A stretch of 29,449 nt of DNA from Macrostomum lignano (lineage: Eukaryota), in assembly GCA_002269645.1 (NCBI GenBank), contig NIVC01004985.1:1-29449 (forward strand), in the 5' to 3' direction. The notes beneath the pieces were generated by a model that saw only the letters and a program-made list of their open reading frames with translations, did no database searches and was not told where the DNA came from. Shown here in pieces: positions 181 to 29,449 of this stretch. The translations under genes were made by a program, and so were the position numbers. The stretch's first letter is position 1. Every line of letters begins with the position of its first letter.

Positions 181-648
<468 letters not shown>

Positions 649-664
649 ATACAGGCGTTTAAAG

Positions 665-770
665 ACAGGGTTTAGGGCCAGGTTTTTTATTGACAGGGAT
701 TTTAGGGCCAGGGGTGAAGGGCGAAGGGTTTAGGGACAGTGGTTTAGGGGGAGGTCGTAAGTGGCAAGGG
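665..770 (+). repeat. Degenerate G-rich GGGTTTAGGG-type repeats
   Basis: Several agggtttaggg / gggatttaggg / ggtttagggg units, including a duplicated acaggg..ttagggccagg. Confidence 0.45.
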
Positions 771-2604
771 TTTTAAGACTAGGATTAACGGGGCTAAATG
801 AAAGGAATTAAGAATTAGTGGGGTTTATGGAGTGGGGCGCAGACGGTATGAATATGAATTGCGGGGTTACGCGTCGTAGGGCTAGACTTTTATGTAATCC
901 ACTTGCGAGCTATCTTAACAATGACTTTCAATCTTCAACCGAAACCATTCGTTGGACTCTGGGAAATTGAGTTTCGAATGAGAATTCTTGACTTTAAACA
1001 CGTTTTCTCCATAGAGAAAGGCGTGTGAATGCAGCAGGAGTCTTTAGGAGATGCAGGAGATGCTAAAGCTTGCAAGCAGGAGAGTTCCGCTTCAAAAACT
1101 TTTTGCCGATCGGGTGAGGACCCCAAGGCACAATGCGCCTGGCAATGATCAACCAACCATGGTAGAAGGAAAGCAGTGGCACGCAGACAGAAACTAGTGA
1201 CCCACAGACAGCTGCTGCTTCAATACTGCACATCACGTCAAAGGAAACTCAACAAAATGCAGGCTGTGGTGTCTTGATAGACAAACACAGGAAAACGCGA
1301 GTAATTAGGCGGTTTTCCGCAGAAACGCGAGTAACTTAGGACAACCCGCGCTTATATTACACATCCAACCACGAATTATTACGCGATCGATAAATTTGGC
1401 AACAAAAAAATGTATTAATTGTCTGCATCACATTTACGGTGACGCCTACTTACAGTAGAGTAGTAAGAAAAATATCCCTTTTAGTTAGTTAGTAAAACGA
1501 CCCTTTTAAGGGCTCCTTGCCACGACACAACACAGGCAAGAAGAAATTCAAAGACAGCACCCATGATGAGGCCAAATACAGGGGGAAATATAGGGAAATA
1601 CTACACAAATTATCTGATTACATTCGTTACACTCGTCATATGAAACTGAGGAAGACAAATGTGGCAATAACTTTGGCAGTTTTTCTGAGGTAAATCTGCA
1701 AGGATGGATATTGAGCTAGGAAGTCCTTTATGTCTTTGTTTTTCCTAATTGGTAGACATTCACAACTCCAGCCCTCAGCCGTTTCTATGGCGTGTTATGT
1801 AGCTCTTTCACAGCAAGTGTGCGGACGGAAATTCTCACAATAGACAGAGCTTAAGGGGTTTGACGTAGACTTGACAATGCTTCTTGTGCATTCATACAGG
1901 TCTTCCAAACTGCATGTCTTCTTGGCTAGCTGGAAAGAGCCCTTCTCTTTTGACAACTTGATTGACTGACGCGTTGCCTGCTCTCCAATGGCAGAGATTG
2001 AACCTCCACAAAGCTTTTGCTTGGTTTTGATGCAGTGCCATTTCTACAACTGTTTGCCCTTTGACAGCAATATATACGCTGTAGGACTTGCCAGCATCTT
2101 TTGGTATTATCTCAGTTGGAAAACTGATTGCGCTTTCTAGCCATTTTGGTTTGGGCCATAGACTATGACTGCATAGAATGCAGTCATACTCGTATTTGCG
2201 AAGGGGGGTGCCTAAAACCATATTTGTTTTATGTAGCTTATTAGAATTTTCGTTCCAACGCGTGTTTAAAATAAAATGAGAGAGACAGTGTAGGCGCTCG
2301 CTTCACTTCTTCTCTCGCCCGCTTCTGCGGGCCCAAAGGCATGGCCATTGCCCGAAATATTTGTTCATGGCAATGACCTCCGGACAATGACCGGCCATTT
2401 TCTGGAGGTAAAATAACAAGACTGGACAACAATACCATAGGCGAAAAAAGTAACACGAAGCGTGAAATTCTTATATTTATTGAAGTCCAACAAAAAATGT
2501 TCCAACAATAACACTGCTTAGTCAATTGAGTGCAAGTCTAACCTATGGTCATGTTCTCATCACGACAGCAGGAGAAAGTCCAGAAAATACGACGGTTGAG
2601 TCCA

Positions 2605-4067
2605 TTACTCAAATTTGCAACCATTGAATGAACAGTTGTGGAAACTGTACCTGACCGACGGATTGTCATGACTGATGCCGGTGATCTGCACGGAAGACGA
2701 CACAGGTACTGGCACCGGTGAACTCTCACGCAATGGAGTCGCAACAGCTTGTGAAGAACCATTCAAATCAAGTGCCATAGAAACAGCCTCACTGGTAGAC
2801 TGCAGCGAGCGATCACGGCGCTTGGACAGGTAACGGCGAGTTGTCCTCTCAGAAACCTGACCGGTTATCGACATGATGTCAGCCAGGTTGTACCCAGCAG
2901 CCTCTAGATCAGCAATCCTGCTCACTCTACAACAGAAATAAAGTATTGCATAGAAAATATGCAACTGGTTTAAAGCAATATGAAGAAAAAGGCTTACCGA
3001 ATGCAATGATTCGTGTACATCTTGGACAAACCGGCCTTCTCGCTCAAGTTTCGCATGAAACGCAGGAAGTAGTTCTCCCCGCGATTCTGCTTTGTTGAGA
3101 ACATAGGCTGTCCATTGGAATCCGTGTTGGATAGTGGACGCGGGAACAGATGGTTGTCCTTGGTTGTTGGAGGTAGCAGTTGTACATGTAGATATCTCCT
3201 CACTTTGGCCGTGTCGTAGATCCGAGCTTGTTTGTTGTCCGGCCTGGCCTTCGCCTTCACAGGATCGGCTGACTTATTCTTCGTTGGCAGAGCAGGAAGA
3301 CAGTAGTACTCCTTGCCGTCAGAATCCGTGTGCAATTCAAGCGAGTCCCTTTGTCTCAGGAACTTCAGATGCTCCTGGCCACGCTCTCCAAAGGAGTAAA
3401 GAACATAGAACAGAAATTTAGCCTGCTCGATTTCAGCCGTAGTCCCTTCAAAGTAGCACCGCAACTTCTGCATGTCGCCTTCTTCAATTGGTTCATACTG
3501 CCTGGTGCAGCCACCATCTCGATGGAAATCACGAACCTTGACACGCAGCATCTCGTTGCAGGAATTGAATTCCTCACCACCGATTATATCGACAGGCAGC
3601 TTCAGAACCATGCGTAGGAAACGCTGAATTCCAGCCCGGATACAGATGAGAGAGGCCGGCGAGTAGAACGAGCCATCCTGTTTCTTCAGCTTGAAGTAGA
3701 AGTACCGAAGATATTGGTTCAATGTAGGATTGTTGACATGCTGAATGTTGCGCAGATTCTCCCCTTCCAGGAAGTCTCGAAAACGTTGGCCATGCTGGTA
3801 CATCTGCTTCCGAGTATCCTCAGGCAGACTCTCGATCTCGATTCTGTCCATCTCGGAAACGTCTATCTTTTCATCTCCATCGATCATTGGCAGCCCAGTA
3901 TCAGCTGGACCATTTTGGACATACTTCAGGAACGCATCGAAATCTTCGTCGTGCCGATCAACGGCAGAGGATTCCGAGAGGAAGTTCAGTTCATCCTGCG
4001 TGATGTTGCCGAGGTCCTCACACGGGAGGTTACCCCAATTAATATAATGTATTATCGGGTCGCTCAT
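2605..4067 (-). CDS. Crypton-type tyrosine recombinase (DUF3504-like); exons 4067-2998 and 2926-2605
   Basis: Motifs LRYFYFKLKKQDGSFYSPASLICIRAGIQRFL, GERGQEH, YTNHCIR. A 71-nt GT-AG intron (2997-2927) joins in frame to VSRIADLEAAGY..IMSITGQ..RRY, completing the YR catalytic set with Q in place of the second His. Confidence 0.85.
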
Positions 4068-4999
4068 GATGGACAGAAAACTCTTGAATCAACAGGTTTG
4101 GACAGACTACTTACTGCCTGGGAATCCCTCACACAAACCCCTTCACCCCCACTGAAAGTTTTGGTGGAAGACATTTCAACCCTCCATTCAATCAATAGGA
4201 TTGTCATTGCCATGAACTCTCCCCGCCTTTTGGCTTTCGTGCCATAGACGTTTGTGCCTCCTCCTTCTGGGCCACTTCGATTCGTGCCATAGATATTTCC
4301 TGCAATCCTGCAATGTTGCTAGCCGCTCGTGGCTTTGGCCGTTGCCTGGAGTTCTCTCTTCCAGTTAACCCCCCATTGCCTCGGCTGGGCTTCGCTGGAC
4401 TCGGCTCGGCTGGACCGCAGCAGCCTGGGCCCAGAAATACCGTGTTTCGAATTCAATTCTTTGTTATCCGACGTGAGCAGAAGTTGTAGGCAGGACGCAA
4501 AATGCTACCTGTTACAAAAACTACTTCTCCATGTCCACTTTTGCAAGCCCCAATAAAGAAATTGACTACAAAAAGCGATAATTACTCCACAGACAGGTGC
4601 TAAGCTTAGAACTATATATAAAATGATCAAATTATATCATCAAGGTCTGCCAAATTGAGGCTACGAGCGTATTTACTCGTAGAAAAGCACTGGCTCGTCG
4701 CAAGAGAAACGGTGGCGATTGAGCTGATTAAGAGAGATTTAAGGATGGCATTCGTTTCCAGGAAACTACTAGAGTAATGAAGTAAAATGCATCCTGAGTA
4801 ACTAACTTACTCGCTGAAATTTCTGCGTTCTAGTTAAAAAATAAACCAATCAGAAGTTTTCTGACTGAAAAAAGTTGCTTCCTGACCGTTCATAAAAACC
4901 TTAGAATTTCCTTCTAACCTGTTAAGACCCGGCGTATCTTAAAAGGTATTAACGTTTACCGAATTATTTGTTCATTAGAAGCAAAACAAATTAAGCCCA

Positions 5000-5752
5000 A
5001 TGCAGCTTTGTGTTTTTCTACTGCTGCTGTGGGTCCCTGCGGTGCTGTCCGAGTCCTGCAGCTCCGCCAGGCTGAAATTCCACCAAACCACCGGACTGGA
5101 CTGCGTGAGCTCCGACTTCACCAGCATCGTGTCCGGTCTGTGCACTCCGCTCGAATGCAGCCTCGTCTGCGCTAGGAAGGACAAGTGTCAGGCCTTCTCA
5201 GTGCTGACAGCTGGAGCCTGTCAGTGCAAGCTGTTCCTGTTCGATGCGTGCAGTCACCGTGTGCAGTCTGTGCCGAGCTGCACTCACCAGGTGACTGTGT
5301 ATGTGAGGTCTCTGCCCGGCGTACCTCCGGGTCGCCTGTGTCCGTCCGGATACGAGCACACGAGATACGGCACATCGTACAAGGTGGTCACGTCGGTGAC
5401 ACTCACCTGGAACAACGCCAACCTGACCTGCAGTGCGGATCCCGGACTGACCAAGTTCTCTGATGCGATCGACCTTGATGAGGCTCTGCACCTGAGGTCG
5501 CTGAAGCAGCTGATGGGCAGCTCGTCTGATTTTTTCCTTGGCGGATCTGGAACTTCGAATGCGCACTCTGACTGGTTCTGGGCCGCCTGCAACCTGCCCG
5601 TGAACGCCAGCGTATGGCACTCTGGAGAGCCGAACGGTCCTGCGTCATTGGAGTGCACAAATCTTTGGCATGGCCATTCAACTGGAGGCGTTGACGATGA
5701 CTCCTGCAGCAGTGCTCGCAAGTACATCTGCGAGTGCCAGTCCGTGTTCTGA
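5000..5752 (+). CDS. Secreted C-type lectin with an N-terminal Cys-rich (PAN/apple-like) domain
   Basis: Signal peptide MQLCVFLLLLWVPAVLS; CSLVCARKDKCQAF; CTLD motifs TWNNANLTC, WHSGEPNG, EC, DDDSC..KYICEC. Single exon; EPN motif is mannose-type. Confidence 0.9.
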   Translation: MQLCVFLLLLWVPAVLSESCSSARLKFHQTTGLDCVSSDFTSIVSGLCTPLECSLVCARKDKCQAFSVLTAGACQCKLFLFDACSHRVQSVPSCTHQVTVYVRSLPGVPPGRLCPSGYEHTRYGTSYKVVTSVTLTWNNANLTCSADPGLTKFSDAIDLDEALHLRSLKQLMGSSSDFFLGGSGTSNAHSDWFWAACNLPVNASVWHSGEPNGPASLECTNLWHGHSTGGVDDDSCSSARKYICECQSVF

Positions 5753-8700
5753 AGAGTCTAACATTGAAATTATGATCCAACAATGACGAAATCTTGCGTG
5801 TGTTAAAAACGGTTACAAAAAGTTTTTTTAATATCCTTACATTGCTATACGAAGTAGCTTATGATTTTCAACTTCATGAAACCTACATGTACCTGCTTGC
5901 GTTCAAAATTTATTTTCAGTTTTTCTCCAACCAAGTTTTTGAAAAGCAGCGAAAAAGCTTTATTTAGAAACTGCCTTAGCTTGTAATCCGTCTTTTTTCT
6001 TGATAATAAACAAACTAAATATGTAACCACTGTATCTCAACTAATTGTACGGCAGAAGTAGACATATTTTTTAGCCTAAAGTAACTTTCTGAATTTTCGA
6101 CGAAAATGTATTGCGTTGCCTTGGTTAGTCCTACCTTCATAGAACAATTACCCTTGCCTATTCTAGCTCTATGCAACGTTTGTCTTAACTTTTTAAATTC
6201 TCTTTCTTATAGCTACAGCCACTGCAGAGATGCTGCCTGCATAAAATGATATTAGATACTAGTAGAATCAATAATTACTCGCATACAAAAAGTTTATATT
6301 GCAAGAGAGAACTTATAATTCAAATACACTACGACCTGTCGAAGGAAACGAATTAATCGTTCTTCATTCTGCCCTCAGCTTGCAGTCACCCTAGCAACAC
6401 GGGAACTCTAATGGTAGTGTGCTTTCACGGCAGAAATTCTGCTTGCTCTTCTATGTGGCTGGAAATTTCCTCTGGGAAAAACCCGGCTGCTGGAGAATGA
6501 CATTGAAGAGACGTTCGCCACCTGTAGTAAAGATAAAGTTAGGGAAAAGATAAAATGGAGGATTTGAATAGGCCGGTGAGGCTGCGTTTCTGCCTCAGTC
6601 TGACTTTCTGTCTTCATGGGGTTACTCCCAAAGTCTGTGGGAAGGCGACTTTTGTCCTCAGATGTCTCTGCAATCAAGTGGAGTGCTCAGGCCTGCCGAC
6701 ACAATGCGATGGTTTGCTCTGGCCTTCTAAAGTTTCCTAAAATTTAACATCTGCGCCCTTGAGTTCTCATATTCTCTCACTCTCAAGTCTGTTTCTCTTC
6801 AAATATTTTTTTATTTTCATTTCTCGTTTAGGTAAATCTCTCTGCGATAACCGGAGTGCTGCAATGCCCAGGAATTTTCATTTTACATTATTGATTTATT
6901 TGCAAACCTGCCTAGCGATTAGAAAGTCGGGGCCGTTTACACCCTGTGTGCGTGCCTGTCTACAGTATTTGTGATTGTTCTCAGCCTCTCAGATCATTTC
7001 ATGACCTCTGAGGCTACTTTTAAGTTAAGGGAGTCGAAAATTTGCTGGCACGGTACATCATTGAATTGGATAATTCAGTTAGTTTAAAGTTTTTAAAAGG
7101 TTTCAAACTTGGTTAACTACTACTTGAAGTAGAAGAAGTAGAAGAAACTGGTTTTCGGACGATGTGTCTGAAGGCGTTGCAACAGGGTGCCTACAGTCCA
7201 CTTGCAAGTATCATTAGTACTGCTATTATTATTACTACTACCATTAGTGTTACTAGTATTACTTTTAGTCTAAAATAATCGTTTTGTCTCTCGTTCAATA
7301 TTTGAAGACTTGTCGATTTGTCAAGATATCCTTTCCACCAACATTTGTACCGGAAGCTTGCTTAAAAAGGTCAAAAAAACTTAACAGATCCTTCGTCGTG
7401 TATCTGACTTTGAGACAGACAGCAAGAAATACAGTAGGCAGCAGTGGAATTTCAGTTACTCTTAGCTACTCGTGTTTGGGCCTCAAGGTGTCGACCCACA
7501 CCTATCAGAGGCATAGAATAAAAATCAAAATTATATCTTTGACTCATAAATTTGCCACGATTATTCGAATCAGACGCTGGTGACATATCTATATGCTACT
7601 AATAGTATGAAAATCAAAATTGAACTTGACAAAAAAAGATATGGAAGCCTATATTTTAACCAAGGTAAGAGATTTTCCGAGGAAAATTAATTGCAACTGT
7701 TTTTACTGCAGAATAACAACTCATTCAAGCCCAACACGTCAAGGGAGAAATTTTTTGCATAGAACAAAGGTTTTTGCTGTCTGTTTGCTTTGCTTTTTGT
7801 GCCACACCAAATATCGAGAGAGCCCCTCAAGGAGCCCCTCGAGAGGGCCGACCCTTGGAGTCGACGACTGCACCACACGGTACAGTCGAGACCGCTTTCC
7901 CGTCTGTCCAACAGGACATGCTGATAGACCTGCCATTAGACCACTGAGGTCATTATTTTCGGCTGGGGGCCACGTATTCCGGCTATTCGTGACACATGGC
8001 AAGCGAACTTTTGCCCGATACCTGACAGCCCAACCTGGCGGCTAGCCAGAGTCCGGAACTGCTAGTAGGTTTGCCGGAAGTCCGGCGGCTGCTGCTGTTA
8101 GAATTCTCGTCGAGATTGGCCGATGATGCATCGATTTGGTTCGGCTACTATTGCAAGACGCCACTCGATGCCCCATCGCATATTCGCATTCAAGTACAAC
8201 TCACTGTACAGTACGGCACCCCTACTGACTGCAAGAACAGATCCATCAAGATCTCCAAGACAATCCTGCCTCAGTTTGATCTGCATGCATGAAAAGCAAA
8301 AAGCTGCTGCAAGCGCGGCGAATGTTTTGCATACGTTCATGTATTATATGCGCATGTATGGATAGCAATGCTCGACAAGTACAACTGCAAACTCATTCTT
8401 GGCCTACAGAAACTTCTTTCTACACCGAAAATTACACCGCAGGATAAGATTTAAGACTCTCTGTCGTGGTCGAGTTTAAAACCCGACTGCAGTCACTCAA
8501 TGATTTTTCCATTTTCTACACAATGGGTGGTTGTCTGAAATCTCAATTCCAGACGACATCATTGTCCAAATTGTCAGCTATGGGTTAGAAATCAAAGTGG
8601 GTGGGGGACGGAAATGAAGGTGTGGGGGCGAAGCCCCCACATCTTAATATCTGCCACGTCTATGGTAAAAGCCAAGGGTTAGAAAAAATCAGTTAGTTCA

Positions 8701-8824
8701 GTTCCAGACAACGGCAGAACACACGAAATCATAGCGAATGATATGTCTATGGTCAAGATGACGGAGTTTTAAAGAGTCTCTGTTCATAGGGCGAGTAGAA
8801 TCATTTTCATAGAGTCGCGATAGA

Positions 8825-9367
8825 ATGGAAGGCATTCATTTTCCAATCAATCTGACAATCTGCCTATCGACGAATTAGGCAATCAATGTCGACTCGTTCG
8901 AACTGAACTTTATTTCTGAGACTTCAAACATCGAACCACGCAACGACGACTTTGCCGCGTTCCTTGACTATACATTCAAAGTGATCGTTCTAACGATGAA
9001 CTGCCGTGCCTAGATGGCGAGCAACTTGATGTTAACGAGATGGATCGAGTAGAAATTGAAAGCCTACCTGCCGAAACGAGGAAGCAGATGTACATTCACG
9101 GTGAACGCTTCCTTAATTTCCTAGCGAGTGAGAAACTACGAGACGTTTCAGAAGTGCCGGCCGAAACCCTCAATCAGTACTTCAGGTACTTCTAATTTAA
9201 ATTGAAGCGGCAGGATGGAAAGTCATATTCCCTGCTCCTGGCTCGGATGCCACTGTCTCCATCCAATCGGGCCGCGCCTATGCTTTACCGGCTTCAATAG
9301 TCACGACAACCCTGTGGCTAAGTTCAGTTTCAATGGATGCAGCTTTAATCAATGCAAGTTCAACTAA
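8825..9367 (+). mobile_element. Internally deleted, decayed Crypton relative
   Basis: Translates to LPCLDGEQLDVNEMDRVEIESLPAETRKQMYIHGERF and TLNQYFRYF*FKLKRQDGKSYS, matching the N-terminus of the 2605-4067 protein. It jumps near 9230 to HDNPVAKFSFNGCSFNQCKFN*, matching that protein's C-terminus. Has stops and frameshifts. Confidence 0.8.
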
Positions 9368-9700
9368 ATTTTGTGAGACATTTGTGCGACGAATTAACTA
9401 TAGCTAAAAGTGTGCTTTTGATTGTTATATGTTAAGTTTAAAATATACGCGTTAACTTAAAAAATTATACCACTTCTAAAAATTCCAAACAATGACCGGT
9501 CATTGTATGAATGTCATTGCCTTGAACTAAATTACCATAGACATTTTGAACATTGCTATTGTTTAACTGTGACTTGATAAAAGCTGTCGAAAGAATCACA
9601 TATGCTGGTCTAGGGAGCGGAACAGAGAACCATCGACTTGACGCAAGCGTTAACGCGTAATTTTTAAGTTGCAACTCTAGATTCCTCTTTCCGCAACTAA

Positions 9701-12128
9701 TTAGTCCTCATTGATGCACTTCTGGCCATCTGTAACAAGTCCAATAGCGGCCAGTGCTATCACCAAAGACACGGTAATGCCAAAATAGAACGCAAACAGG
9801 CAGGTGTCAACGCCTGAAATTATGGTGCTCCATTGACAGCGCAGAGCGTTCTCGCAGGCGGTCTCAGACTCGTTGTCGGGCGACAAGCTCTGCCGGACTG
9901 AACCGTCGGCTTCCGGCTGCCGACGGCTCCGACGAGCGACGAACGAGTGAAAGAACAGCGTCCGGAGCAGACGTCCCGGGGGAGCGGCGCGGCAACACCG
10001 GCTGTGGCAGCTGAGAACGAAGGCGTTGCCCAAGACGACGGTCATTGTCATCACCACCGCCAGAGTGCAGTAGCAGGCTGGACCAGGAAATAGAAGAGAG
10101 TGGGCGAGTGCGTATGAGAAAAATTTGAAATCGAGTGGGTTAACGTCGAGAGGAAGTGGTACATACAAAGCCGTGGGTACAAGTAAAGGATGCCGGAGCT
10201 CGTGCTACATTGATAAGAAGAATAAACAACAAACTAGCTCGTACGAGGTCCGGCAAGTAAGTATGCAGTCATTCATTCACAAGGTCGTCTGGTATGCAGA
10301 TAGACTCGCATTAAAAAACAACTCAACAAAGAACGTGATAACCCAAGCCACTCTAAGTTTATAGCTAAATTTCTTTTGCGAATTTTAACTTGAGTAACTT
10401 TGCTGTTGTTACTCAAAAATCATTACAAATCATTTTCATCAACATAAACGTAAATCATAAACGAATAGATTTATATCGTTTTTTGTCGAGTGACACAACT
10501 CCTGTGCAATTAACTGCAGCAGATATCTGGATTTATGTCCACAGAACTCACTTAGCAGAGGGACGGATTCACTCTGCGTGGGCGTGTGCTCATTCACCAT
10601 CTGCAGGAACACGCACATGGACAGCACGATGGTGATGCTGAATGACATCCGCTCGCCGCAGTCCGGTGGCAGTCGGAAGGTGACGGTGGAGATGGCGAGC
10701 AGCAGGAGGCTGGGCAGGATTAGGTTTATCACGTAGAAAATGGGCCGTCTCTGAAAAAAAATATTGGAACGTGATGTTGCCTAAAAATTTTGCAAGCCAA
10801 TTAAATTTTTTAGATACAGACGCAATATTCTTACCTTGAAAGTGATGGCAAACTGCAGAATATCAAAGTAGTAGTCCACAGTCTTCCTGATTGTCGCTCC
10901 TGTAATGCAAAACTCGTCGTTGCGGGCCAGGTACTTCGTGATGGAGTCGTTCTCTAGGTAGGCTCCGATGTGCAAAGCCAGCACCTGCTTCGAATGAATG
11001 GCTGACGAGATGGGCACTACGCAGCGCTGCTTGTCATAGGGAAACTCGAACATGCTCATTGGGCACTTGCTGGTAATCACGTACTGGGAGGTGTACATTA
11101 CCGATCCCTGAGAGCTAACGTGAGCCATTGCGTTGCTAAATGACACCCGCTGTATGAACAAGCTGCAAGTTTTGGTTGGACAGTGTAACGTTGCAAGCAT
11201 CCCGAGGATTGCTTTTTTATTGCTCTTGAGTTTAGTAACGTCTATTAGAGCTTCCATTAACCATGCAGTTCAGACACACGATTTGCTTACTCTTAAAATG
11301 CTTCAGTAATGCCGCATCGTCAACTCGTTGAATCCGCAAGAAAAATGTTGTACAAAGTCCCAGTAATATTCTATAGAGGGCTTCTACTTACCAGTTAGAG
11401 GAATATACAAAAGCAAAGTGGGTATCCACATTGCAGACTGTACACTCGTATAAACAACCAATGGACTCATTGATTTTTTTTTCATTTATATTAATTAATA
11501 CACAAACGAGTATCTACCTAGTAGAACAGAGCAGCTAGTGAGAATCAAAATGGTAACGAACACATCCCGGTCTCACAGATCGATGAAAGACACATCCGGT
11601 AGCCACAGCAGCCTGGCCGGAAAGTAGACCGCCGTCTCGCTGTCCAAACTGTCGTTGAAGCGACCGTGCCAGGCAAGTCGGCGGTCTGTCCAGGACTGGA
11701 AAAAAGTTGATGACTTTTTACCTGTTGCTGATCCTGAAAAATCTGCAGAACATTAGAGAGTGATTCGCGGTCTCTAAATATGTCTTACCAGTGTAAGCCA
11801 CAGGAGTAGACTGACCTCCTGAGATGCGGAATTCTGAACAGCAGAAATAATGAATAATTAATGAGTAAATGCGAGGAACATTACGTACATAAATCAAGTT
11901 CATTAGTTGATATCGTCCAAAACTCACGACAGCCACCAGACTATTAAAGTTGGTGTGCACCCGGACCAGATTAGCCGTCCCATTATCCGGTGGCGGTCTC
12001 ACATCCGGGTTGTAGCCGTTGGCAGACTTTAACCGCAGTGCCGCGGCAATTCGTTCATCAGAGGAGACATCTGGCACCGTGGCGGTCGCGGTGGCAGCGC
12101 AGATCAAAATTAGGCCTAGTAGCAGCAT
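9701..12128 (-). CDS. Cys-loop ligand-gated ion channel subunit A (nAChR-like, non-alpha), apparently intact, ~422 aa
   Basis: Six exons with GT-AG introns in consistent phase: 12128-11928, 11833-11789, 11695-11577, 11162-10835, 10750-10552, 10077-9701. Signal peptide, WTDRRLAW, LWLPDV, Cys-loop CPMSMFEFPYDKQRC, M1-M2 FRLPPDCGERMSFSITIVLS, M3, M4. Confidence 0.88.
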
Positions 12129-13086
12129 GTGAGATCAGTAGCCCTGGTCGCACGGAATTGCTTAGAACTTCAGCTGAAGTCTTGTGGGTCTAACTGCATC
12201 TACCACTGGTCATGCAGGCCATCCTATATCCTTTTTAGTGGCAGTGCTTTCTGTTCGTCTATCCCTCAGAATCCACTCATCTCAGTCAGTTCCACATCCC
12301 TGGCCTCAGTGTTTACCCTTCTGCCCGGATCCGCTGGCCCGACCTTGCTTGGCAAAGCACTCTGTTTCATCAAATTTGGTCGTGCATGGCTCACTAAAGC
12401 TGCATATATGCATATCGTTATATAACATCACGTTTCTCCCTGGGCCACCCTTCCAATGTTCAGAATCGTACCTTTTCTGCACGTTAAATCGCCTGTCTCT
12501 GCAGATAGGAGTATCTGCTTTTTATGTGCCAATTTCTCTTCTTTGTTTTTCTCCTTGCTAGCTCCCAGAGAGTCTAAACGCATTCTACTCATTCTCTCTG
12601 ATTCAAGCCTTGTGGCCCGCTGTCAGAATCTTTTCATAATCCTATTCATATTTGAGCTTTCAGTCAATCGTTGATAGTTATTAACAAACAGAGATTCGCT
12701 GAGCAAACAAAATCTGTCCGCTTGCTCTGACACGAGCTTCATAGTCAGTTGGCTCAAAAACTTTCAATTAATAAAATCAGCATGACAGCTTTTTGCTGAT
12801 CCCAAAAAGGCATCAAAGTCAGTGAGTAATGCTCCTTTTGCGTCAAAGGTGATATATATTTATAGGACTTTCCTATTGTAGTTTAATTTGCAACGAGTAG
12901 CACTAGTAGTAGTTTGTGCAGCTGTTAAAAATATAGTATTCATTACGGTTTTCTACTATAAATAAATATTCCTTCTTCGGATATACTCTTCCGACTATCT
13001 AAAGTCCATCTGTAACTCGAAGTTGTCTCTGTTAATCCAAAATACTTCGTGGTCGTGACTGCCCAGTTCTTCACAACTCTTCATCT

Positions 13087-15152
13087 TCAATAATTACTCG
13101 ACATGTCGCAGTTGGTCCGCGAGTTCGTGATCTCCAGGATTAACAGCGTCAGCGTCAGCGCCAGCTTCAGGCTGAAGAAGACAGCGAAGAAGCAGCGGTC
13201 GGCGGCGAACAGCAATGGGGATCCATTCTTTGCGAGGGTCGTTGTCCCGGCAACGCGGAGTCTGCTCCGCCTGCGGTTGACTTGGCGTAGCTGGTCGCCT
13301 GGGCGAGACGACGTTCAACTCGCTCTCGTTGGATTCCTGCGAATGGGGTGCCAATTTTAACCGCAAATGGACACAGAAACTTATAGATCTGCCAAATCTG
13401 ACACAGGCTTGGCAGTCTTAACAAAATCCAACCCAGCTCTCCGTCTCTCCCTTACTCTCACCGCGTTCCGGACAGCGGCGGTGGCGCTGTGGTTTCGAAC
13501 CTGGTAACACTTTCTGCACTGCAGCCGGGCACATGCGAACATATTGAGAAACAGAAGTCGCATTAGCCGGCTTGGGACTTTGGTATGCTCATTCTCGGAC
13601 GAATGCTCAAAGTAGCAGCTCAGTACGAAAATGTTGGCAATCAAGTGAAGCATTGTCAGAAACACCGCGAGGCTGAAGTACCAGGCTGGAAATTGGAGGA
13701 GGACAAATAGGTCATGAGTCTCAATATTCCAGCCTGTAGTTCACTCTCAGTGTTGGATTGAAATTAGCTCGAAACTCACTGAGCAAAGGCACAGATTCCC
13801 CCTGTGGAGGCATATAGTTGCTGCTGAGCTGCAGGAACACGCACATAGACAGCACGATGGTGATGCTCAATGATATTCGCTCTCCGCACTCGGGCGGCAG
13901 GCAGAAGACCAGGGTAGAGATGTAGAGCAGCACGAGACTCGGAATGATCAGGTTCATGAAGTAGAATAGTGCTTTACGCTGAAAGTGTCAAAGGTGAAAC
14001 TGGCTCTGCGAAAAAACGGGGACTATGACAGGGGAGTCCACAAAAAGTGTGTGATCCCCGTTCCAACTCAACCAAATTCTGAGAAGTTTCTACCTTTATT
14101 TCCACCTGCAGCTGAACAATATCGTAGTTCCACTTATCGATAGAATTTGAAACGCTGACGTTCATCACGCAGAAGTCGTGGTTCTTGAAGAGGGAAGGCG
14201 TGATTCCAGGTGGTCCAGGCTCGATGCGCAGTGGTTTTTCTCGTGTGCACCACCGAAGATACGCGCTGGTGGCAGATCTGCGTGTCGTGTAGGGAAAGTT
14301 GGCCATATTCATTTCGCACTTGGACCAGGAGAGCAGCTCAACAAGGAACAGCACCGAGCCGTCGCTGCTTAAAGTCAGGAAAACTTTATCGCTGGAGGTG
14401 CGCCGGAAGTGCAGGCTGAAAGGTTACATGAGTACCATTAGATGAATGTCACCGTTAGTCCATTATCTTGAAGTTTCTCTAAGAGAACAATCGGGGTGCC
14501 ATTGGGAGACTTAGCAAAGCGGTATGGCTGCAATTGCATAGGAATGATCAAGCCCAAGGAAAAAGTGTCGCACTTACAGGTTGCCGAAGGCCACATCCGG
14601 TTGCCAGAGCAGACTGGCTGGCACAAAAATGGAGCTCACGTTATCGAAGGTAGAGTTGAATTTTCCTTTCCAGGCCAGGCGGCTGTCCCGCCAGTACTGT
14701 AGTGAAAGTGCAAATTAAATGAATCGATAGCTCACTGCTGCACCGTGAGTCTGATGTAATAAAACTCGATGCGTCAATGTCTGCGGCAGCAATGAACTTA
14801 CGAGTCACGTACCAAATTGAACCAGGTTTGCAGCACGATCTCCTGCGTTGCCGAGTCCTTCATTTTTTGGTTAGAAATGATTTAATGCTCACGATCTGCT
14901 CCAAAATTCAACATTGTTCTCACAAAAAATCGACAAAGCCGAAGTACTCACCACATGAGCCAGGCTTTTCAAGTTGAACAAGACGGTCACCAAGTTGGCT
15001 GAGCCGTTGTCCGGTGGCGGCCGGACGTCTTTGTTGTAGTCGGAATTTAAATTCAGCGCCGTTTTCAGGGCCTCATCCGGGGACACTGAGGCAGCCGCCG
15101 CGGCACGGCAGAGCAAGAAAACTATGAAGCTTGATAGCGGAGACTGCGGCAT
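13087..15152 (-). pseudogene. Cys-loop channel subunit B, frameshifted
   Basis: Same exon layout (YNKDVRPPPDNG; DSATQEIVLQTWFNL; YWRDSRLAW; CEMNMANFPY; FCLPPECGERISL). Has +2/+1 indels inside the Cys-loop exon (~14290, ~14233) and a +1 shift before M4 (~13208). Confidence 0.8.
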
Positions 15153-15715
15153 GCTAATGAGCTGGAGTCTGGACGCGGCTCAGACAGGTGGTTTGGGCTC
15201 ATTATTTATCCAGCAGTTGCAGCCCCTCCATTCCCCACTTCCCCAGCCAACTTGGACATCCCCGGTAGAGTCTGCCTCGGTAATTATTTCTCTTTTAAAA
15301 CCTCTAAAAGCGTTGACAGCTTGAGCTGCAGCCAATAAATTCCTGCCCGTTAACAACCCGATAGGGGCAATTATTATTGGATGCGAAGACAAATTGAGAT
15401 AATAAAATTTATAAAAAGAGTTAAGACTATTTATTGAATTTTTGACAAATAGAGTTTGCAGGTAGTTAGGCTACGGAGCAGCTAAGTAGGTTTTATTACC
15501 TCTACGTTGCTCAAAGCCCATTTACGTAATTGACAAAGTAGTTACAGACCACTAATTGCACAGAGGGTGGCTCACTCGCATTAGGTTTTGTTGTGGAGTG
15601 CGTATTAAAAATTAAAGCATTTTGATGGGGCAGCTGCAGGCCTATGGCTGCCAAAAAAAGTATGAGAAGTATGTCACCAAGGATATATTATTAGCTAAAC
15701 TCAAGAAACTATTTT

Positions 15716-16475
15716 TTAACTGTCAGACAGACACGCTACTCATAGCAGAATCTAAGCCAGCGTCAGGCCGAAAAAGATCGCGAAAAAGCAGCGGTCAGCA
15801 GTGGCCACGACAGCGCTCCAGCTGTTGACATCAGTGGCCCGGCAACGCGAAGGCTGCTCCAACTGCGAGTCGAAGTTGACGGTTCGTCGCGACGAGATGT
15901 CGCTCATTTCTTTGCTGTCAGCATCACTGACCTGTGGGACCGTGACACATTTGGTTTGGCTTCTCCTGATAAAACGGCACTAGCAGTAAACGAACACTTA
16001 CTCCGATGGAGCTTCGTTGCGCAACACTGTTAAAATTTTTACTTCTGGACGGCTCTCGACAAAATCGGCGCCCGCAGACGAATCTATTGAGAAACAGCAG
16101 CCGAGTCAGACGATTGGGGACTCGAGCATGCTCAGAAAACTGCTCAAAGTGGCAACTCAGAACGAAGGCGTTAGCAACCAGATTAGCCATGGTCAGAAGT
16201 ACCGCGATGCTGAAGTACCAGCCTGCAGAATTTCACAGGAGCAGGTCCTTATTCAACAGACACTATTTTTAATCTCAATAAAATAAAAGAGTCCGGCCGC
16301 GACACTCACTGAGCAGCGGTACAGAATCTCCTTGAGTTGGTATGTAATTGTCAGTGAGCTGCAGGAACACGCACATCGACAGCACGATGGTGACGCTCAG
16401 TGACATTCTCTCGCCGCATTCCGGCGGCAATCGGAATACCAAAGAGGAGATGGCGAGCAGCATGAGGTTCACGAC
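15716..16475 (-). pseudogene. Cys-loop channel subunit C, transmembrane half only
   Basis: FRLPPECGERMSLSVTIVLS, WYFSIAVLLTMANL and ADRCFFAIFF exons are present. M1 lacks the IIPSL segment, M4 has TAG at 15754-15752, and no extracellular-domain exons were found before the viral element. Confidence 0.8.
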
Positions 16476-16684
16476 AGAATGCTGTCCTTCGCTGCAGTTT
16501 GAAATGCATGACAAACTTGTATTGCCTATCAGCATAGAATACAAAGTGAAAAGAACCTGAGCACCAAACCTACATAGCAACTCGGAGCTCCACATATTCG
16601 TATTGCACATCTACTGACTTGGCTGTGCTGACGTTGACAATGCAGAAATCACTGTTCCTATCCAGGTAGGTTGTCAGCGAGTCC

Positions 16685-16933
16685 AGTAGTATATACGATA
16701 CAAAATAGCCAGCAAACCGTTCTCACCATTGCAAACAATTTAACCCTTTATCAGTGTGAAATGACTTGTTTTCCCTTCATTTTCGCTCGTCTTCACTTCG
16801 CTCAACTCGCTTCGCTCATCCTCGCTTCATTTCGGTCAAACAAGTCATTTCACACTTACAACGATTAATTCTCTTTGAATGGTGAGAACACGCTCTCGTC
16901 GAACGCTTTGGTTTGCTGGCTATTTTGTATCGT
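16685..16933 (+). repeat. Left terminal region with an internal inverted repeat
   Basis: 16695-16718 is the exact reverse complement of 16910-16933, and 16719-16730 of 16878-16889. Confidence 0.85.
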
Positions 16934-17338: not shown

Positions 17339-17353
17339 AAAAATATTTAAAAA

Positions 17354-17578: not shown

Positions 17579-17588
17579 CTGTTCAAAC

Positions 17589-19195
17589 TTAGTTCGCAGA
17601 CATTAGCTGGTTCTCATAAAAAGAACCCAATATTTCTTCACCGTCCTTATCAGCAATTATATAGGTTGTAGGATTGGTATTTAAAACTTTACTGATAGTA
17701 AATTTCTCACTTATTTTCCAATATCCTTTTCTTCCCTTTTCAAACTTATCTTTCCATTTATAGATATAAACAGAATCACCAACCTTAAAACCTTTAGTTT
17801 TCTTTTTTTCAAATTCTCCAAAAGTAACTTTAACTTTTTCAGGATTGTTATAAGCTTGTTGAGGAGTCATCTTTATAGCCGAATGATATGAATTGTTATA
17901 ATCTTTCACAACGTCTGGTAATATTTTTACCCACTTTTGATTTCCATTCAGACTAAATTGAAACCACAATTTCTTACCTAAAGTTCGATTAAATCTTTCT
18001 ATTAATGCGTTTTTACTTTCGCCGTAAATAGAATAAATTTTATTAATATACTCCCCATTCGCGTCTTTTTTCCTTTCTTGTCCTTTTTCAAAATGATATA
18101 ATTTATACATATGAGGATTGTAAAATTCTTTTCCTTCATCAACACACAACCTTTCACTTTTTTCTCCAAGACTTCTAAAAGCAGCCGCAACATCCTCTCC
18201 TTTTTTGGATTTTAAAGGAACAGCCCACGCATATCGAGTAAAACCATCTAATATGGTTAAGATATATTTATATCCTCTTTCGTTCGGCATCGACATTAAA
18301 TCAGCATACCAAATTTCATTCTTTTTGAAGTTCATGATTTTTCTATAAAATTTAGGTTTTCGATATTCTTTATGAAGAATCTTTGCCTCATCAGAACTTA
18401 ACCCGCCGCCACTTAATAATAAACACTCAACACAATTATTTCCATGTTGATTGTAATTAATTCCCAATCCAAATTTAACTTTAGACTGTAAGATTTTTTT
18501 AACCATCCACCGAGTTAATCTTTGGCTTACCGATAACCCCTGTAAGTTATCTAATCCTTGAATCATTTTTCTATCAGCTTCATGTTTTAATCTTAATGCT
18601 TCCTCGGGTGAGTTCTTATCAGCATCTCTGTATGCTAAGTCATGATAGTATGCTAACCAATCAATACCGTTAATGGGAATTGAATCGGCTTTTGGTGTAT
18701 TATCAGGATTTAATCTCAAATCTAACCTAGTACCCGGCAGTTTGCCCTAAATCTTTCGAAATAGGCTGGAGCACACCTTAAGCGGATAAATTACCGCCCA
18801 CCTCCGTCTGCTCTCTGAACCTTCTCCATATCTGCCGACTTAGGAGCTTGGCTGCGCATTGCCACCGTGTCTTCAAGCTTGTTACCTTTGGGAAGAGGAG
18901 TTACCTCTGTTCCTTCAAAAGATTTCTCAATTGAAGTGGTACTTGAAGCTGTATGACGGGTTTCGCGCAATTTGAAGGTGTCGCCACAAATAGTGACTAG
19001 CAAGGACATTGCCTTCCTCACTCAGGCCACGGGTTAACCTGCGAAGTTGTAAGACGGGATGTGTAATTCATTTGTATACCTTCCAGTAGTAAAGATTGGT
19101 GGTAAGCTTGTTAATCCTTTTTGAACATCTAACAATCCTCCTTCAAATACTAATTGTTCGAACCTTCGGTTCGCATGCGTCGCATGATCGCTCAT
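17589..19195 (-). CDS. PLA2-RVE integrase fusion, 435 aa after intron removal (exons 19195-19037 and 18737-17589)
   Basis: Spliced junction ELHIPSYNFAG|PGTRLD..PINGIDWLAYYHDLAY..EADRKM is a parvovirus-type PLA2. It is followed by the DDE triad WYADL, CVDEGKEF, NALIERFNRTL and the Polinton-type C-terminus FEKG..W..EKF..GEEILGSFYENQL. Confidence 0.92.
18738..19036 (-). ncRNA. Group I self-splicing intron (IC1-like), 299 nt, no internal endonuclease
   Basis: Exon ends in U and intron ends in G. P1 CAGGU/GCCUG with U.G at the splice site; P3 CACCUUC/GGAGGUG; P4 UUGCGC/GCGCAG; P7 GA-GAGCA/UGCUCC; P5abc with A-rich bulge and GAAA loop; CCUAAG/UAUGG receptor; P8, P9, P9.0, P10. Excision restores the reading frame and the GPG motif. 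Confidence 0.96.
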
Positions 19196-19745: not shown

Positions 19746-19772
19746 TTTATAAAAAATAAATTTAACAATTAA

Positions 19773-20478: not shown

Positions 20479-21951
20479 ATGGCTGAAACAAAAACTATAT
20501 GGAGTGATAAATTTCATTTCAAAAAGCACCGTCAGTATATTAATGAGGTCAGAGCGAGAGATTTAAACTATACTCTACCAACAAGCGATAATACAAATAA
20601 CTTTACTAGCGGAACGGTAGCTTTTGACATCGGCGCAACCAACACCATATTGGATATGAAAAATGCATTTTTCCGCGTTAGATGGTTGTATACTAGAAAT
20701 GATGGAACTGCTCTAGCAGCCGGAGATATCGCAGATCGATCTGGAATAATAATAGAAAATGATTGGTTTTATAAATGTTTTTCCCAAGCTCAACTAACTG
20801 TTAATGGTGCCGAGGTTGAGACATCATCAAACCCCGCAGAGATTAATGGAGTTTTGAAACATTTAAATTATACTTATTTATCAAAACAAGTTGGTGATAA
20901 TGTTGGGTGGATGCCGGATAAGGGCAATGGTCAAGCAGTAGTTTTCCCTAATGTACAAAACGCAGCTGGTGCAGATACTGCAGCTCTTATTGCTTACATT
21001 AATACAAACATAGTTCCAGTTGTAACCACCATGACTAATACAAAAGATATTAATACTGGTTATATAGATAGACAGAATAAATTCCCAGTTGCAGTTTTAA
21101 CCACGGCAACGGCATATGAGCAGGACTTTTCAATCTTTCCACTATTTGGATTCTTCTCACCAAATCGGGTATGGAAAGGATTAAAATTTGGGGTACAGTT
21201 GCAAATATCTGGTGGATATCAGCCTAGGATACTTTATGGAACCTCTATTTCAACCGATATAGCAGTTCGCATAGCATCAATACAATTAGTCGTGCCAACT
21301 ATTGAGGTAACAGCACCACTTTTAAAACATGTCGATAATCAGTTAACGCATGATCAAGAAATATTTTATTTGAATCGTAGACATTTTATGCGAACCATTA
21401 ATAATAATCAAGATTCATTCCAGTGGCAAATACTGACATCAAAACGTCGGGTGAGATATATTTTTGTTTGGTTTAAGATAACAAATAGAAGGAGTAAAAG
21501 AGCAAATGGGGATTTATATTGGCTTCAATCAGGTGATGTAGCAGCACAGGGTGCCACTGCAACAGACAATGCGGTTGCGGCCATTAACGAGTTTAATGTT
21601 CAGAATATCCGCCTGCAGGTTGATGACCAATACTATCCGGTTAAAGATCCTCTTAATCTAAATATTGCAAATAATGATGTTAATGATTTTATAAAATATT
21701 ATCAAGATTATGCCAAAAATGAAGCGTTTGCCGTCCCTCAGTACACACCCACAGAGTTTCTAAACATTCATCCAGTAGTTGTTTATGATCTAACGGCACA
21801 GAAAGAAAATGTAGCCAATGTTGGGCTTAATTATATGTTAGAGATTAATAAAACCGGTAATCAGGCAATAGACGCCCACGCTTTGTTTCTAGAGGAATAT
21901 ATGTCAATTGCTAAAGCCGACGGCACCATCGTTCGGGACGCCCCGCTGTAA
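20479..21951 (+). CDS. Major capsid protein (double jelly-roll, Polinton PY/hexon-like)
   Basis: 490 aa, beta-rich; KCFSQAQLTVNGAEVETSSNP, RRVRYIFVWF, NIRLQVDDQYYP, HPVVVYDLT; located upstream of ATPase and penton. Confidence 0.88.
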   Translation: MAETKTIWSDKFHFKKHRQYINEVRARDLNYTLPTSDNTNNFTSGTVAFDIGATNTILDMKNAFFRVRWLYTRNDGTALAAGDIADRSGIIIENDWFYKCFSQAQLTVNGAEVETSSNPAEINGVLKHLNYTYLSKQVGDNVGWMPDKGNGQAVVFPNVQNAAGADTAALIAYINTNIVPVVTTMTNTKDINTGYIDRQNKFPVAVLTTATAYEQDFSIFPLFGFFSPNRVWKGLKFGVQLQISGGYQPRILYGTSISTDIAVRIASIQLVVPTIEVTAPLLKHVDNQLTHDQEIFYLNRRHFMRTINNNQDSFQWQILTSKRRVRYIFVWFKITNRRSKRANGDLYWLQSGDVAAQGATATDNAVAAINEFNVQNIRLQVDDQYYPVKDPLNLNIANNDVNDFIKYYQDYAKNEAFAVPQYTPTEFLNIHPVVVYDLTAQKENVANVGLNYMLEINKTGNQAIDAHALFLEEYMSIAKADGTIVRDAPL

Positions 21952-22000: not shown

Positions 22001-22763
22001 ATGGCAAAAGCAAAACACAATAAGATATTTCCAAATGATCCTTTTCTTTGTTTAGTAATTGGTGGGTCGGGTAAAGGAAAAACACACTTTGTTTATGACC
22101 TGTTAACAACGGATGGAATGATAGACTATAATAATTTAATAATTTATACTAACAAACCTAGAATAAAATATTATGAATTTCTTAAACATGGATTAAAAAA
22201 CAAATTAAAAAAAGATGTCTTGTTTAGAATGTTAAGAGCATATGAGCAATATGAGGATGATGACGAACCGCGATTTACACTCGATGACATTGAGGATTTA
22301 TGTAAAACAATGGCACAACAACCGGAAAACATCACCGAACGAGCCCCAACCGTTAGAGTATCAACCCGATTACCCTATCATCAAATTCCAAAAAATGATA
22401 AAACACTAATTATTTTTGATGATTGTATTAACGACAGTGATCAAGAATTGCAAAAGGATATTTTTGTTAGTGGTAGAGGGGATGGAATTGGCGCTTTTTA
22501 TCCAACACAGTCCTTTAGAGAATTAGAATCGATTATAAAAAAATGCAAGTTGTTGTGTAATGTTTGATTTAGATAATTATGATTTACAAAATATACACGC
22601 TAGATTTAATCCCGGGTTGGATATAAAACCATTTAAAAGTATGTGTAAAAAAATTTGGGATGACAGCCAATACAAACATATATATATCAACCCTAGGTTA
22701 GAAAGGAAAAATCGAATCTTAAGAGATCTGATAAAAGAAGATAATGAGGAAGAAGAGACTTAG
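22001..22763 (+). CDS. A32/FtsK-like packaging ATPase, one frameshift
   Basis: Walker A GGSGKGKT, Walker B LIIFDD, GRG..FYPTQS. The frame changes in the A7 run at 22537-22543 and continues as NASCCVMFDLDNYDL..YKHIYIN. Confidence 0.9.
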
Positions 22764-28222: not shown

Positions 28223-28498
28223 ATGTTTTATAGTGATTATGGGGACGATATGTTTCCTATCCGATACGACTTGGATAAAAGAAAGCGTTTTATACAAAAA
28301 GCAATTGATTATGCTGAAACAGTAATTGAAATTGAAATAGATAGATTGGTTAGACGAATAAAAAAACTTAGGAAAAAAATAAAGGAATGTTTAAGTTACC
28401 CTGCCGACTGCGAGGACAATTGGCCTTCAATAATATATGAAATTGAAGTTAATGATATGGTCAAACAATTACATGCTTTGGTTTTTTTCAAGTGCTAA
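28223..28498 (+). CDS. Hypothetical viral protein (91 aa)
   Basis: Clean ORF, helical and charged; no motif recognised. Confidence 0.5.
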   Translation: MFYSDYGDDMFPIRYDLDKRKRFIQKAIDYAETVIEIEIDRLVRRIKKLRKKIKECLSYPADCEDNWPSIIYEIEVNDMVKQLHALVFFKC

Positions 28499-29449
28499 TT
28501 CATCAATATCAAACTCAAAACAATTATAATCAACATCAAATAGTAAACTGTTATAATATGCAATTGAATTTTCGTGTTGTGGTTTGTCATCAAAATAGTT
28601 TTTAAAGAATGGTTTCATAACTCCGTTTTTATCCGGTTTTTCTCTTTTAAATGTGTTTATCGTAGAGGTATATGTTTTTGATATTGTTGATCCACTTTGG
28701 GAGATTATTATGCCTCCTTCAAACGATCGTTTCCATGGGGCATTATTATTTACTTTTATTGACTGCCCATCATATAACGTTTTAAACGATGCAAAATTAA
28801 TCTTATCATTTGCACATCCTTTAAATGTTTTTTTCTCTTCCATAATAAAATCGTCTTTCAATAAAAGACAATATTTAATTTTAGGAGCGATAAAATAACC
28901 GAATATAATTCCACCCTCTCCATAATCATTTTTTCCTTGACTTAAATTATTTCCAACATGCCCGTTTTTATTTAATGTGTCCCAATTTTTTTATGTATAT
29001 ATAACGAATCTGTATCGCCGTAATAAATTTCTGGAGTCTTTGAGCCGTCTATAGAGGTGATAAATATTATTCATGATCCTTCTTGAATGAGCTAAGATAA
29101 ATATTCCTAATTGTGCTGGACAAAGGCTTGTTATAGGACAATCCTCTTCCTCATCTACATATTCTTGCGTGTCTTTATTTTTTTCAACATAATATAAATC
29201 GTCACATATTTTCTCATATGATTTGATTGTGTCATCGTATTCTGTTTTTAATGTTTGCAAATTCCAGAGATGTGTTGTGAAAGTAATGTCTCTTTGAACT
29301 GTTTTGCCATAATGAATTTAATAGTGTTTTTACCAATTCAGAACCTGCCTCGTTATTTTCTTTTTTAAATACTTTTCTCCTTTCAAAAAGGCTTGTAATA
29401 TAATTCTGAAACGGAGAGAAATCGTAATTTTTTTCATATACAATTCCAC
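28469..29449 (-). pseudogene. Protein-primed family B DNA polymerase, 3' part, frameshifted
   Basis: KTLLNSL[Y]GKTVQRDI (2-nt loss ~29310), PAQLGIFILAHSRRIMN, YYGDTDSLYIHK (DTDS at 29016-29005, out of frame), GKNDYG, FIAPKIKY, KTFKG; three indels. Confidence 0.93.

Follow-up and report, generated by a model that had tools for sequence, protein, structure and literature searches.

Does an animal genome contain a group I intron in a protein-coding gene of an integrated virus-like element, and could such an intron be spliced? The question is raised by contig NIVC01004985.1 of the Macrostomum lignano assembly GCA_002269645.1, analyzed here over its positions 1 to 29,449 (a stretch of 29,449 nt, hereafter the window), for which an initial annotation made from the sequence had proposed a complete group I ribozyme intron inside the integrase gene of an endogenous animal Polinton-like virus. 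To our knowledge, the sole group I introns described from animals are those in the mitochondria of non-bilaterians (cnidarians, sponges, and placozoans), and the nuclear group I introns described come from the rDNA of microbial eukaryotes. We find that window positions 19036..18738, read on the minus strand, are a bona fide, structurally intact group I intron of 299 nt with no internal open reading frame (ORF). It interrupts a gene for a fused PLA2-integrase protein, in an element that looks like a Polinton/Maverick. The parts of the interrupted gene are as follows.

18738..19036, minus strand: group I intron, 299 nt; full RF00028 model, covariation, and homologous introns at the same site in contigs L001, L034, L036, L037, L002, and L033
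19037..19195, minus strand: 5' exon of 53 codons, starting with the ATG and encoding the N-terminal portion of the PLA2-like domain; P0001 and P0004, two intron-less proteins, have homologous N-termini
17589..18737, minus strand: 3' exon, 382 codons plus stop, remaining PLA2-like domain (with the HD dyad) and rve core; from the exon join, Pfam, and alignment

On the minus strand the gene reads ...AACUUCGCAGGU / UAACCCGUGGCCUG ... CAAACUG / CCGGGUACU..., with breaks at 19037/19036 and 18738/18737. The 5' exon terminates in GCAGGU at 19037, the intron extends from its first base at 19036 (UAACCCGUGGCCUG...) to a terminal G at 18738, and CCGGGU opens the 3' exon at 18737. The intron opens with an in-frame UAA, and an unspliced message therefore stops after 53 codons. 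The Rfam model for group I catalytic introns (RF00028; curated gathering score 50 bits) matched 19046..18747 over model positions 1-253 of 253, with 60 bits and an E-value of 8.8e-15, in a search of 551 nt (18600-19150) with relaxed filters. The identical match was obtained in a 12.9-kb scan of the element (E 2.1e-13), and no second group I intron of the element was detected by the Rfam scan of 16500-29449 at E <= 1. The splice boundaries of the initial annotation proved exact to the base, and its claim of a complete intron is borne out by this full-length covariance-model match, which exceeds the gathering score once the filters are relaxed.

The same searches bear on the alternative that the group I resemblance is a matter of chance and that the 299 nt are either an unrelated insertion or a spliceosomal intron within a gene that has been disrupted. 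The Rfam cmscan of the whole 29-kb window with default filters at the gathering threshold left RF00028 unreported, and the thermodynamic signal of the intron is weak by itself, with an RNAfold z-score of just -1.54. However, the default scan missed the intron because of its speed filters and not because of its score, which is 60 bits with the filters relaxed; the intron ends are UA...UG and not the spliceosomal GU...AG; and six other copies, described below, lie at the identical codon boundary with compensatory changes in long-range and pseudoknot helices. We therefore give chance resemblance almost no credence.

Joining 19195..19037 to 18737..17589 produces a stop-free ORF of 435 amino acids (aa). 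The parvovirus-type PLA2-like family PF08398 matches its residues 43-121 (31.2 bits, cut-off 23.9), with the splice junction 53/54 inside the match, and the rve integrase core PF00665 matches residues 191-259 at 32.6 bits, which equals the cut-off. The Ca2+-loop motif [Y/F]xG^xG (the caret marks the splice junction) straddles the two exons as FAG^PG, such that the intron lies between the Gly and Pro codons. Among 5.8 billion proteins, the 435-aa protein has 1112 relatives, and the PLA2 plus rve architecture is found in most of the best. In an alignment of 16 relatives, the window protein shows neither an extra nor a missing residue at the junction, where the motif is ...NF[A/T]G^PGT...; H85 and D86, the HD catalytic dyad, and Y89 are invariant across 17 homologues. 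The close relatives P0001 and P0004 are contiguous across the junction, and the DNA of the closest relative, contig L003, reads ...ACUGGC^CCAGGA, intron-free and with GGC as the Gly codon. Exon ligation had been predicted to rebuild the PLA2 Ca2+ loop in frame, to continue into an integrase, and to have contiguous counterparts among homologues; all three predictions agree with the joined ORF and its two domains and with the many homologues that are uninterrupted at this motif.

A homologous intron occurs at the identical codon boundary (G53^P54) in six other metagenomic or Sequence Read Archive (SRA) contigs, four of which contain it in full.

L001, 694-1528: complete intron at G53^P54, 835 nt
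L034, 687-1025: complete intron at G53^P54, 339 nt, no ORF
L036, 3934-4730: complete intron at G53^P54, 797 nt
L037, 3027-3850: complete intron at G53^P54, 824 nt

The other two contigs, L002 and L033, are truncated and start within an intron that ends at G53^P54. The Gly codon is GGU in 7/7 intron-bearing alleles, and every intron has a terminal G. Several relatives have odd N-termini, either starting at M-PGT or carrying a non-homologous leader before PGT, because introns are present in the DNA of their contigs. Protein P0026 (contig L035) was considered an intron-bearing allele from its N-terminus and rejected, as its DNA is intron-free and its gene broken once. The L034 intron went unreported by RF00028 in an 11-kb search at E <= 0.01, though it is plainly homologous. 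Intron-plus and intron-less alleles, which the initial annotation had proposed to look for, thus both exist: seven are intron-bearing, and L003 and many protein homologues are intron-free. The window intron is one member of a family, and in diverged elements of the lineage this family is found at one and the same site.

The structural elements of the window copy are listed below.

19023..19034, minus strand: internal guide sequence, read from the sequence; its P1 and P10 parts covary with the exons across alleles
18983..19022, minus strand: hairpins P2 (19022-18999) and P2.1 (18997-18983), the latter with a 5-bp stem and a 5-nt loop in the window copy
18819..18969, minus strand: P4-P6 domain, with the P5abc extension at 18948-18871, the L5b GAAA loop at 18926-18923, and CCUAAG/UAUGG in P6a (18844-18839, 18830-18826)
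18799..18980, minus strand: long-range helix P3, CACCUUC (18980-18974) / GGAGGUG (18805-18799); 7 pairs, 100% paired in five copies, 1 compensated
18769..18813, minus strand: P7 pseudoknot, GAGCA (18813-18809) / UGCUC (18773-18769), enclosing P8 (18798-18781); 5 pairs, 100% paired, 2 compensated
18746..18765, minus strand: P9 hairpin with a GAAA loop, structure read on the alignment

P10 is formed by the guide ACCCG (19034-19030) with CGGGU of the 3' exon, and P1 by the guide UGGCCUG (19029-19023) with exon CAGGU plus intron UA, the U of the GGU Gly codon providing the splice-site U.G. The stem pairing of P2.1 in the window copy is GUCAC/GUGGC. Of the helices named in the initial annotation, P1 with its U.G, P10, P2.1, P3, P4, P7, P8, and P9 with its GAAA loop were located, as was the terminal G. 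For the analysis of covariation, the canonical structure was laid on alignments from P3 to the 3' end (P3, P4, P5, P5a, P5b, P5c, P6, P6a, P6b, P8, P9, and P7 as a pseudoknot), with the ORF-bearing copies aligned as separate pieces without excision of the ORF and with slid partners as the control. Between the window and L001, 63/63 pairs are standard in both copies, with 10 compensated and 0 one-sided changes, whereas the slid partners were 40-52% paired with <=1 compensated. In the five-copy comparison, standard pairs fill 95.7% of the 303 cells and 19 of the 63 pairs are compensated, including one in P3 and two in P7 (GC/CG in two copies, CG/UA in three), compared to 37-50% paired and <=5 compensated in the controls.

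The guide sequence follows the exons in the same manner. In P10, the Pro codon ends in G in the window, A in L001, and C in L034, opposite the guide bases C, U, and G, respectively; in P1, the pair at exon base -5 is C-G in the window and L001 and U-A in L036 and L037. P2 and P2.1 are likewise compensated between lineages. P9 is missing from the introns of L034, L036, and L002, in which P7 is followed by the terminal G within ~10 nt. An alternative partner for the 5' strand of P3, given by RNAalifold on two copies, was rejected since the canonical P3/P7 pseudoknot is fully paired and compensated.

The intron architecture appears to be Tetrahymena-like, or IC1-like, with P1, P2, P2.1, P3-P9, and a P5abc extension. 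In common with the IC1-type nuclear introns, as in the Tetrahymena large-subunit (LSU) rDNA, the core (P3-P8, J3/4, J6/7, and J8/7) is near the RF00028 consensus, and P2, P2.1, the P5abc extension, the L5b GAAA loop, and the CCUAAG/UAUGG motif of P6a are all present. By analogy with Tetrahymena-type introns, we read the last two as a probable loop and its receptor. In contrast to IC1-type introns, the window intron lies in a protein-coding gene of a virus-like element and not in rDNA, has no P9.1/P9.2 (some sister copies have no P9), and has GAGCA/UGCUC in P7, with two compensated pairs, instead of the usual GACUA/UAGUC.

In L001, L036, and L037, the three ORF-bearing contigs that were inspected directly, the P2.1 stem closes around an ORF.

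L001, 776-1477: Eco47II-like PD-(D/E)XK ORF, inside the P2.1 loop
L036, 4001-4483: Eco47II-like PD-(D/E)XK ORF, inside the P2.1 loop
L037, 3095-3694: Eco47II-like PD-(D/E)XK ORF, inside the P2.1 loop

The L001 intron ORF encodes 233 aa and has 12 database relatives, which makes a family of 13 clusters. The Pfam family PF09553 (RE_Eco47II) was matched by 12/13 of these clusters (best E 2.6e-8), and D65, E76, and K78 are invariant in the family, in a D...ExK pattern. An AlphaFold (AF2) model built from the ORF alignment is confident for residues 1-165 and disordered beyond; its best fold match is EcoO109I (program probability 1.00), followed by McrC, the DdmD nuclease, Hef/XPF, and BamHI, all of them PD-(D/E)XK nucleases. 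A sequence search of solved structures with the intron-ORF profile gave no significant match. The C-terminal tails of 10 of the 13 ORF products are the translated P3-J3/4-P4 core, in one of two frames, which places those ten ORFs immediately 5' of a group I core; the remaining three products are too short to be informative. In L001, the ORF frame extends ~70 codons into the ribozyme core, and that stretch is predicted to be disordered. Members of this Eco47II-like family appear to be confined to the present intron family.

The intron shows a presence/absence polymorphism at one conserved target site, with seven intron-bearing alleles versus the intron-free L003 and protein homologues, and the window copy, with its 5-nt P2.1 loop, has no endonuclease ORF. 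Contigs L034 (no ORF) and L036 (ORF), from the same sample, are 98% identical, core and exons alike. Between L034 and L037 the core is 96% and the exons 79% identical; compared with the other lineages, the window copy has 74-81% identity in the core and 57-64% in exon 2. From these sequence comparisons, we infer a homing intron family with ORF loss. As in the phage T4 homing introns (td, nrdB, and nrdD), the insertion lies in the coding sequence of a conserved catalytic motif and the ORF in a peripheral loop. Close relatives include alleles with an ORF-bearing intron, with an ORF-less intron, and with none, in parallel with the general homing cycle of intron gain, loss of the ORF, and loss of the intron. 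Unlike in phage T4, the carrier is a eukaryotic virus-like element, the endonuclease fold is another, and homing is deduced from sequence. Another nuclease of the PD-(D/E)XK type encoded within a group I intron is I-Ssp6803I, the homing endonuclease from a tRNA gene intron in a cyanobacterium. Searching solved structures by sequence did not retrieve it, it was absent from the fold matches listed, and the family described here matches PF09553 Eco47II.

In the proposed mechanism, folding of the transcript would bring the guide sequence into pairing with the five bases at the end of the 5' exon (P1, with the splice-site U.G), free guanosine would attack the 5' splice site, P10 (ACCCG/CGGGU) would align the 3' exon, and the terminal G (18738) would enter the P7 pocket, after which the exons would be ligated. 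Splicing would remove the in-frame UAA and create the 435-aa PLA2-integrase ORF. The family would spread by homing, driven by the Eco47II-like PD-(D/E)XK endonuclease that sister copies encode within their P2.1 loop, and the window copy would be an ORF-loss derivative that is non-autonomous and structurally intact. We hold the identification as a group I intron, together with this mechanism, to be highly probable. Splicing in animal nuclei, as judged from the sequence, ranges from doubtful to evenly balanced.

The intron-bearing gene belongs to a set of virus-like genes to the right of a drop in GC content near 17000: PLA2-integrase, capsid, ATPase-like, discoidin-domain, and polymerase-like genes. 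Beyond the PLA2-integrase, these are as follows.

20479..21951, plus strand: major capsid protein, double jelly roll, 490 aa; 24% identity (E 6e-32) to an L001 protein bearing PF21738 DJR-like_dom
22001..22567, plus strand: A32-like packaging ATPase, weak match; PF04665 E 3.9e-4, below the curated cut-off, and tblastn to the A32-like genes of L034 and L035
24230..26275, plus strand: protein of 681 aa that combines an F5/8 type C (discoidin) domain with seven tandem repeats of 57 nt; candidate fibre/attachment protein
28472..29449, minus strand: candidate 3' part of a protein-primed DNA polymerase B (PolB) gene, running off the window; lower bound uncertain

At the window edge, one 71-aa open segment, the most upstream, matches PF03175 (E 4.6e-5, below cut-off) and the DNA polymerase family phrog_11768 (E 8.5e-5). 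The open segments that follow are in other frames: either the gene is broken at least twice or these segments are not part of it. The start of L036, an 871-aa open frame, was compared with the right end of the window for a shared polymerase and gave no match. The protein-primed PolB-like fragment at the right edge makes the element resemble a Polinton/Maverick more than a Polinton-like virus (PLV) without PolB. Of the animal Polinton-like virus put forward in the initial annotation, the Polinton-type element (capsid and integrase) and the animal-like left flank are retained, and the PLV label appears less apt in view of that fragment.

The state of the right edge matters for a further alternative, in which a real group I intron sits in an inactive endogenous copy, neither transcribed nor spliced, and is intact through recent insertion. 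The PolB-like segment out of frame with the following open segments would fit such a fossil, but the polymerase match is too weak to separate damage from mis-delimitation. Open frames are retained for the capsid, the ATPase, the 681-aa protein, and the PLA2-integrase (435 aa once spliced). Loss of the endonuclease ORF from the window copy would also agree with decay, whereas all 63 of its pairs from P3 onward are standard and its P1 and P10 match the exons of the same copy. We regard a fossil intron as a real possibility, although one that we would not favor.

Profile scans of the window found no adenain-like maturation protease. Terminal inverted repeats were sought and just a weak 33-nt pair (79% complementary) was found, which was not accepted; one element end lies in the window. 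The seven 57-nt (19-aa) repeats, at 24343-24912, occupy the N-terminal part of the 681-aa ORF, and PHROG tail-fibre families match the ORF, which suggests a fibre or attachment protein.

Yutin and colleagues are said to have described PLA2-like genes of Polintons in 2013. In the adintovirus protein 'PLA2X', the fusion partner of the PLA2 domain is a core-protein domain resembling pX (Starrett et al., 2021; PMC8502044). The gene described here likewise has a parvovirus-type PLA2 domain (PF08398) in a Polinton-type element, but in the window and in >1000 database relatives PLA2 is fused to the rve integrase. The L001 element has a pair of small proteins at 3124-3567 and 2684-3115, one with a sub-threshold match to the adenovirus pX/mu core (E 6.8e-5) and the other with a weak SAD/SRA match, for which no counterparts were recognized in the window.

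To the left of the element, the window has the character of host DNA.

1..16690, no strand: host-like flank, GC 0.40-0.48, with a microsatellite, a QRICH1/Crypton-like ORF, a C-type lectin, and three tandem Cys-loop receptor exon sets

Among solved structures, the best relatives of the Cys-loop receptor exons are GABA-A and glycine receptors, and the C-type lectin is secreted. The GC content falls sharply from ~0.45 to 0.27 near 17000, which could also be expected if the element were outside the animal genome, as an assembly chimera, the insert of a non-animal flank, or a free virus or protist element in the sample. The single junction in the window leaves room for this, and the close relatives are all low-coverage metagenome or SRA contigs. 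However, flank and element are on one contig, and the flank contains the three tandem exon sets related to GABA-A and glycine receptors as well as the lectin; PLA2-integrase homologues at a greater distance are found on contigs 0.2-13 Mb long; and the element of L037 abuts a long terminal repeat (LTR) retrotransposon pol gene. A non-animal origin is thus improbable in our estimation. Integration of the element in an animal-type genome is likely, as judged from the one junction in the window, a change of composition in one contig.

In L037, the pol gene (protease, reverse transcriptase, RNase H, and integrase) is located at 6343-7694 on the minus strand next to the intron-bearing element, and that relative is therefore likewise in a eukaryotic genome. 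In the window, the element directly follows the third of three tandem, diverged Cys-loop (GABA/glycine-receptor-like) exon copies, which lie at 10439-11257, 13381-14354, and 15924-16610 with ~2.5-3.2 kb spacing (repeat families D3, D4, D6, and D8). A palindrome of ~240 nt at 16690-16935, just outside the GC drop, has outer arms ACGATACAAAATAGCCAGCAAACC / GGTTTGCTGGCTATTTTGTATCGT plus inner arms; it could be a host repeat resembling a miniature inverted-repeat transposable element (MITE) or part of the element terminus, and it had no match among the retrieved loci. Farther to the left, the intact ORF at 2994-4067 (minus strand; 357 aa) weakly matches the QRICH1 domain; it may represent a recombinase-like gene, either derived from a Crypton or domesticated. 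A perfect 8-nt microsatellite at 53-700, registered as 59 copies of a 216-nt frame at 8-nt spacing, yields spurious 'SIYL' ORFs.

The fullest reading of these data is that a Polinton/adintovirus-like element remains active in animal nuclei, that the intron is spliced from its transcripts, and that the intron family spreads between co-resident elements by a new class of Eco47II-like homing endonucleases that targets the PLA2 Ca2+-loop coding sequence. If true, animals would provide a first example of a functional group I intron in the nuclear genome. We advance this reading tentatively. Several points, in addition to the weak z-score given above, weigh against the more modest explanation proposed earlier (group I identity, mechanism, and history). 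The term self-splicing is suggested by the intact structure, and the IC1-like placement by motif reading with P9.1/P9.2 absent. An endonuclease role of the ORF is suggested by its predicted fold, motif, and location. Conservation of the core above that of the exons could reflect purifying selection on the ribozyme instead of horizontal transfer. Finally, the element may be dead, given a PolB-like region at the window edge that is not in one frame and one element end in the window.

In a broader sense, the window shows a structurally intact group I intron that a Polinton-type element carries on the same stretch of DNA as animal-type genes. Animal mitochondrial introns differ in being organellar, in residing in cox1/nad5-type genes, and in carrying LAGLIDADG ORFs, whereas the DNA described here is contiguous with nuclear-type animal genes. 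RF00028 introns were reported in 2025 in PLVs of Paulinella, Desmodesmus, and Rhodomonas, those of Rhodomonas lying within a gene of ~50 aa that precedes the capsid gene and lacking an annotated endonuclease (PMC12220804, Microbiome). These protist introns are similar in being group I introns of ~300-380 nt in endogenous Polinton-like elements and in having been found by Rfam scanning; they differ from the present family in its location in the PLA2-integrase gene, its animal-like flank, and the Eco47II-like ORF of its sister copies. The novelty is therefore narrower than the initial annotation had assumed and concerns the animal context, the gene, and the endonuclease family. Literature searches, with subscription journals outside their coverage, found nothing linking group I introns to animal Polintons, Mavericks, or adintoviruses, and nothing on group I introns in an integrase/PLA2 gene or on Eco47II-like homing endonucleases. 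What appears to be new is the location in an animal-associated Polinton-type element, the fixed site in the PLA2 Ca2+-loop codons, and the associated endonuclease family.

The protist PLV introns are thus no isolated case, and the allele comparison suggests that, in elements diverged from one another, introns have homed repeatedly to a single conserved codon boundary of the PLA2-integrase gene. The ORF-bearing, ORF-less, and intron-less alleles offer a compact natural example of the probable homing cycle in eukaryotic virus-like elements, with a candidate intron endonuclease from a restriction-enzyme family (Eco47II-like) for which we found no description as intron-encoded. There are also consequences for annotation, as gene callers truncate these integrases at the intron, and filters have to be relaxed when AT-rich viral DNA is scanned for group I introns.

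An 18-nt core word of the window intron, spanning J6/7-P7-P3, recurs in viral and metagenomic contigs and is shared exactly with introns of giant viruses (Nucleocytoviricota). The giant-virus introns differ in their host genes (capsid and RNA polymerase) and endonucleases (HNH and GIY-YIG), and the core alone is alignable. In contig L004, a giant-virus capsid gene at 130-4472 (Capsid_N plus Capsid_NCLDV) is split by three RF00028 introns within ~1.7 kb, and a fourth intron in the vicinity adjoins a 482-aa HNH/NUMOD endonuclease ORF. Contig L007 contains an RPB1 gene with a GIY-YIG ORF upstream.

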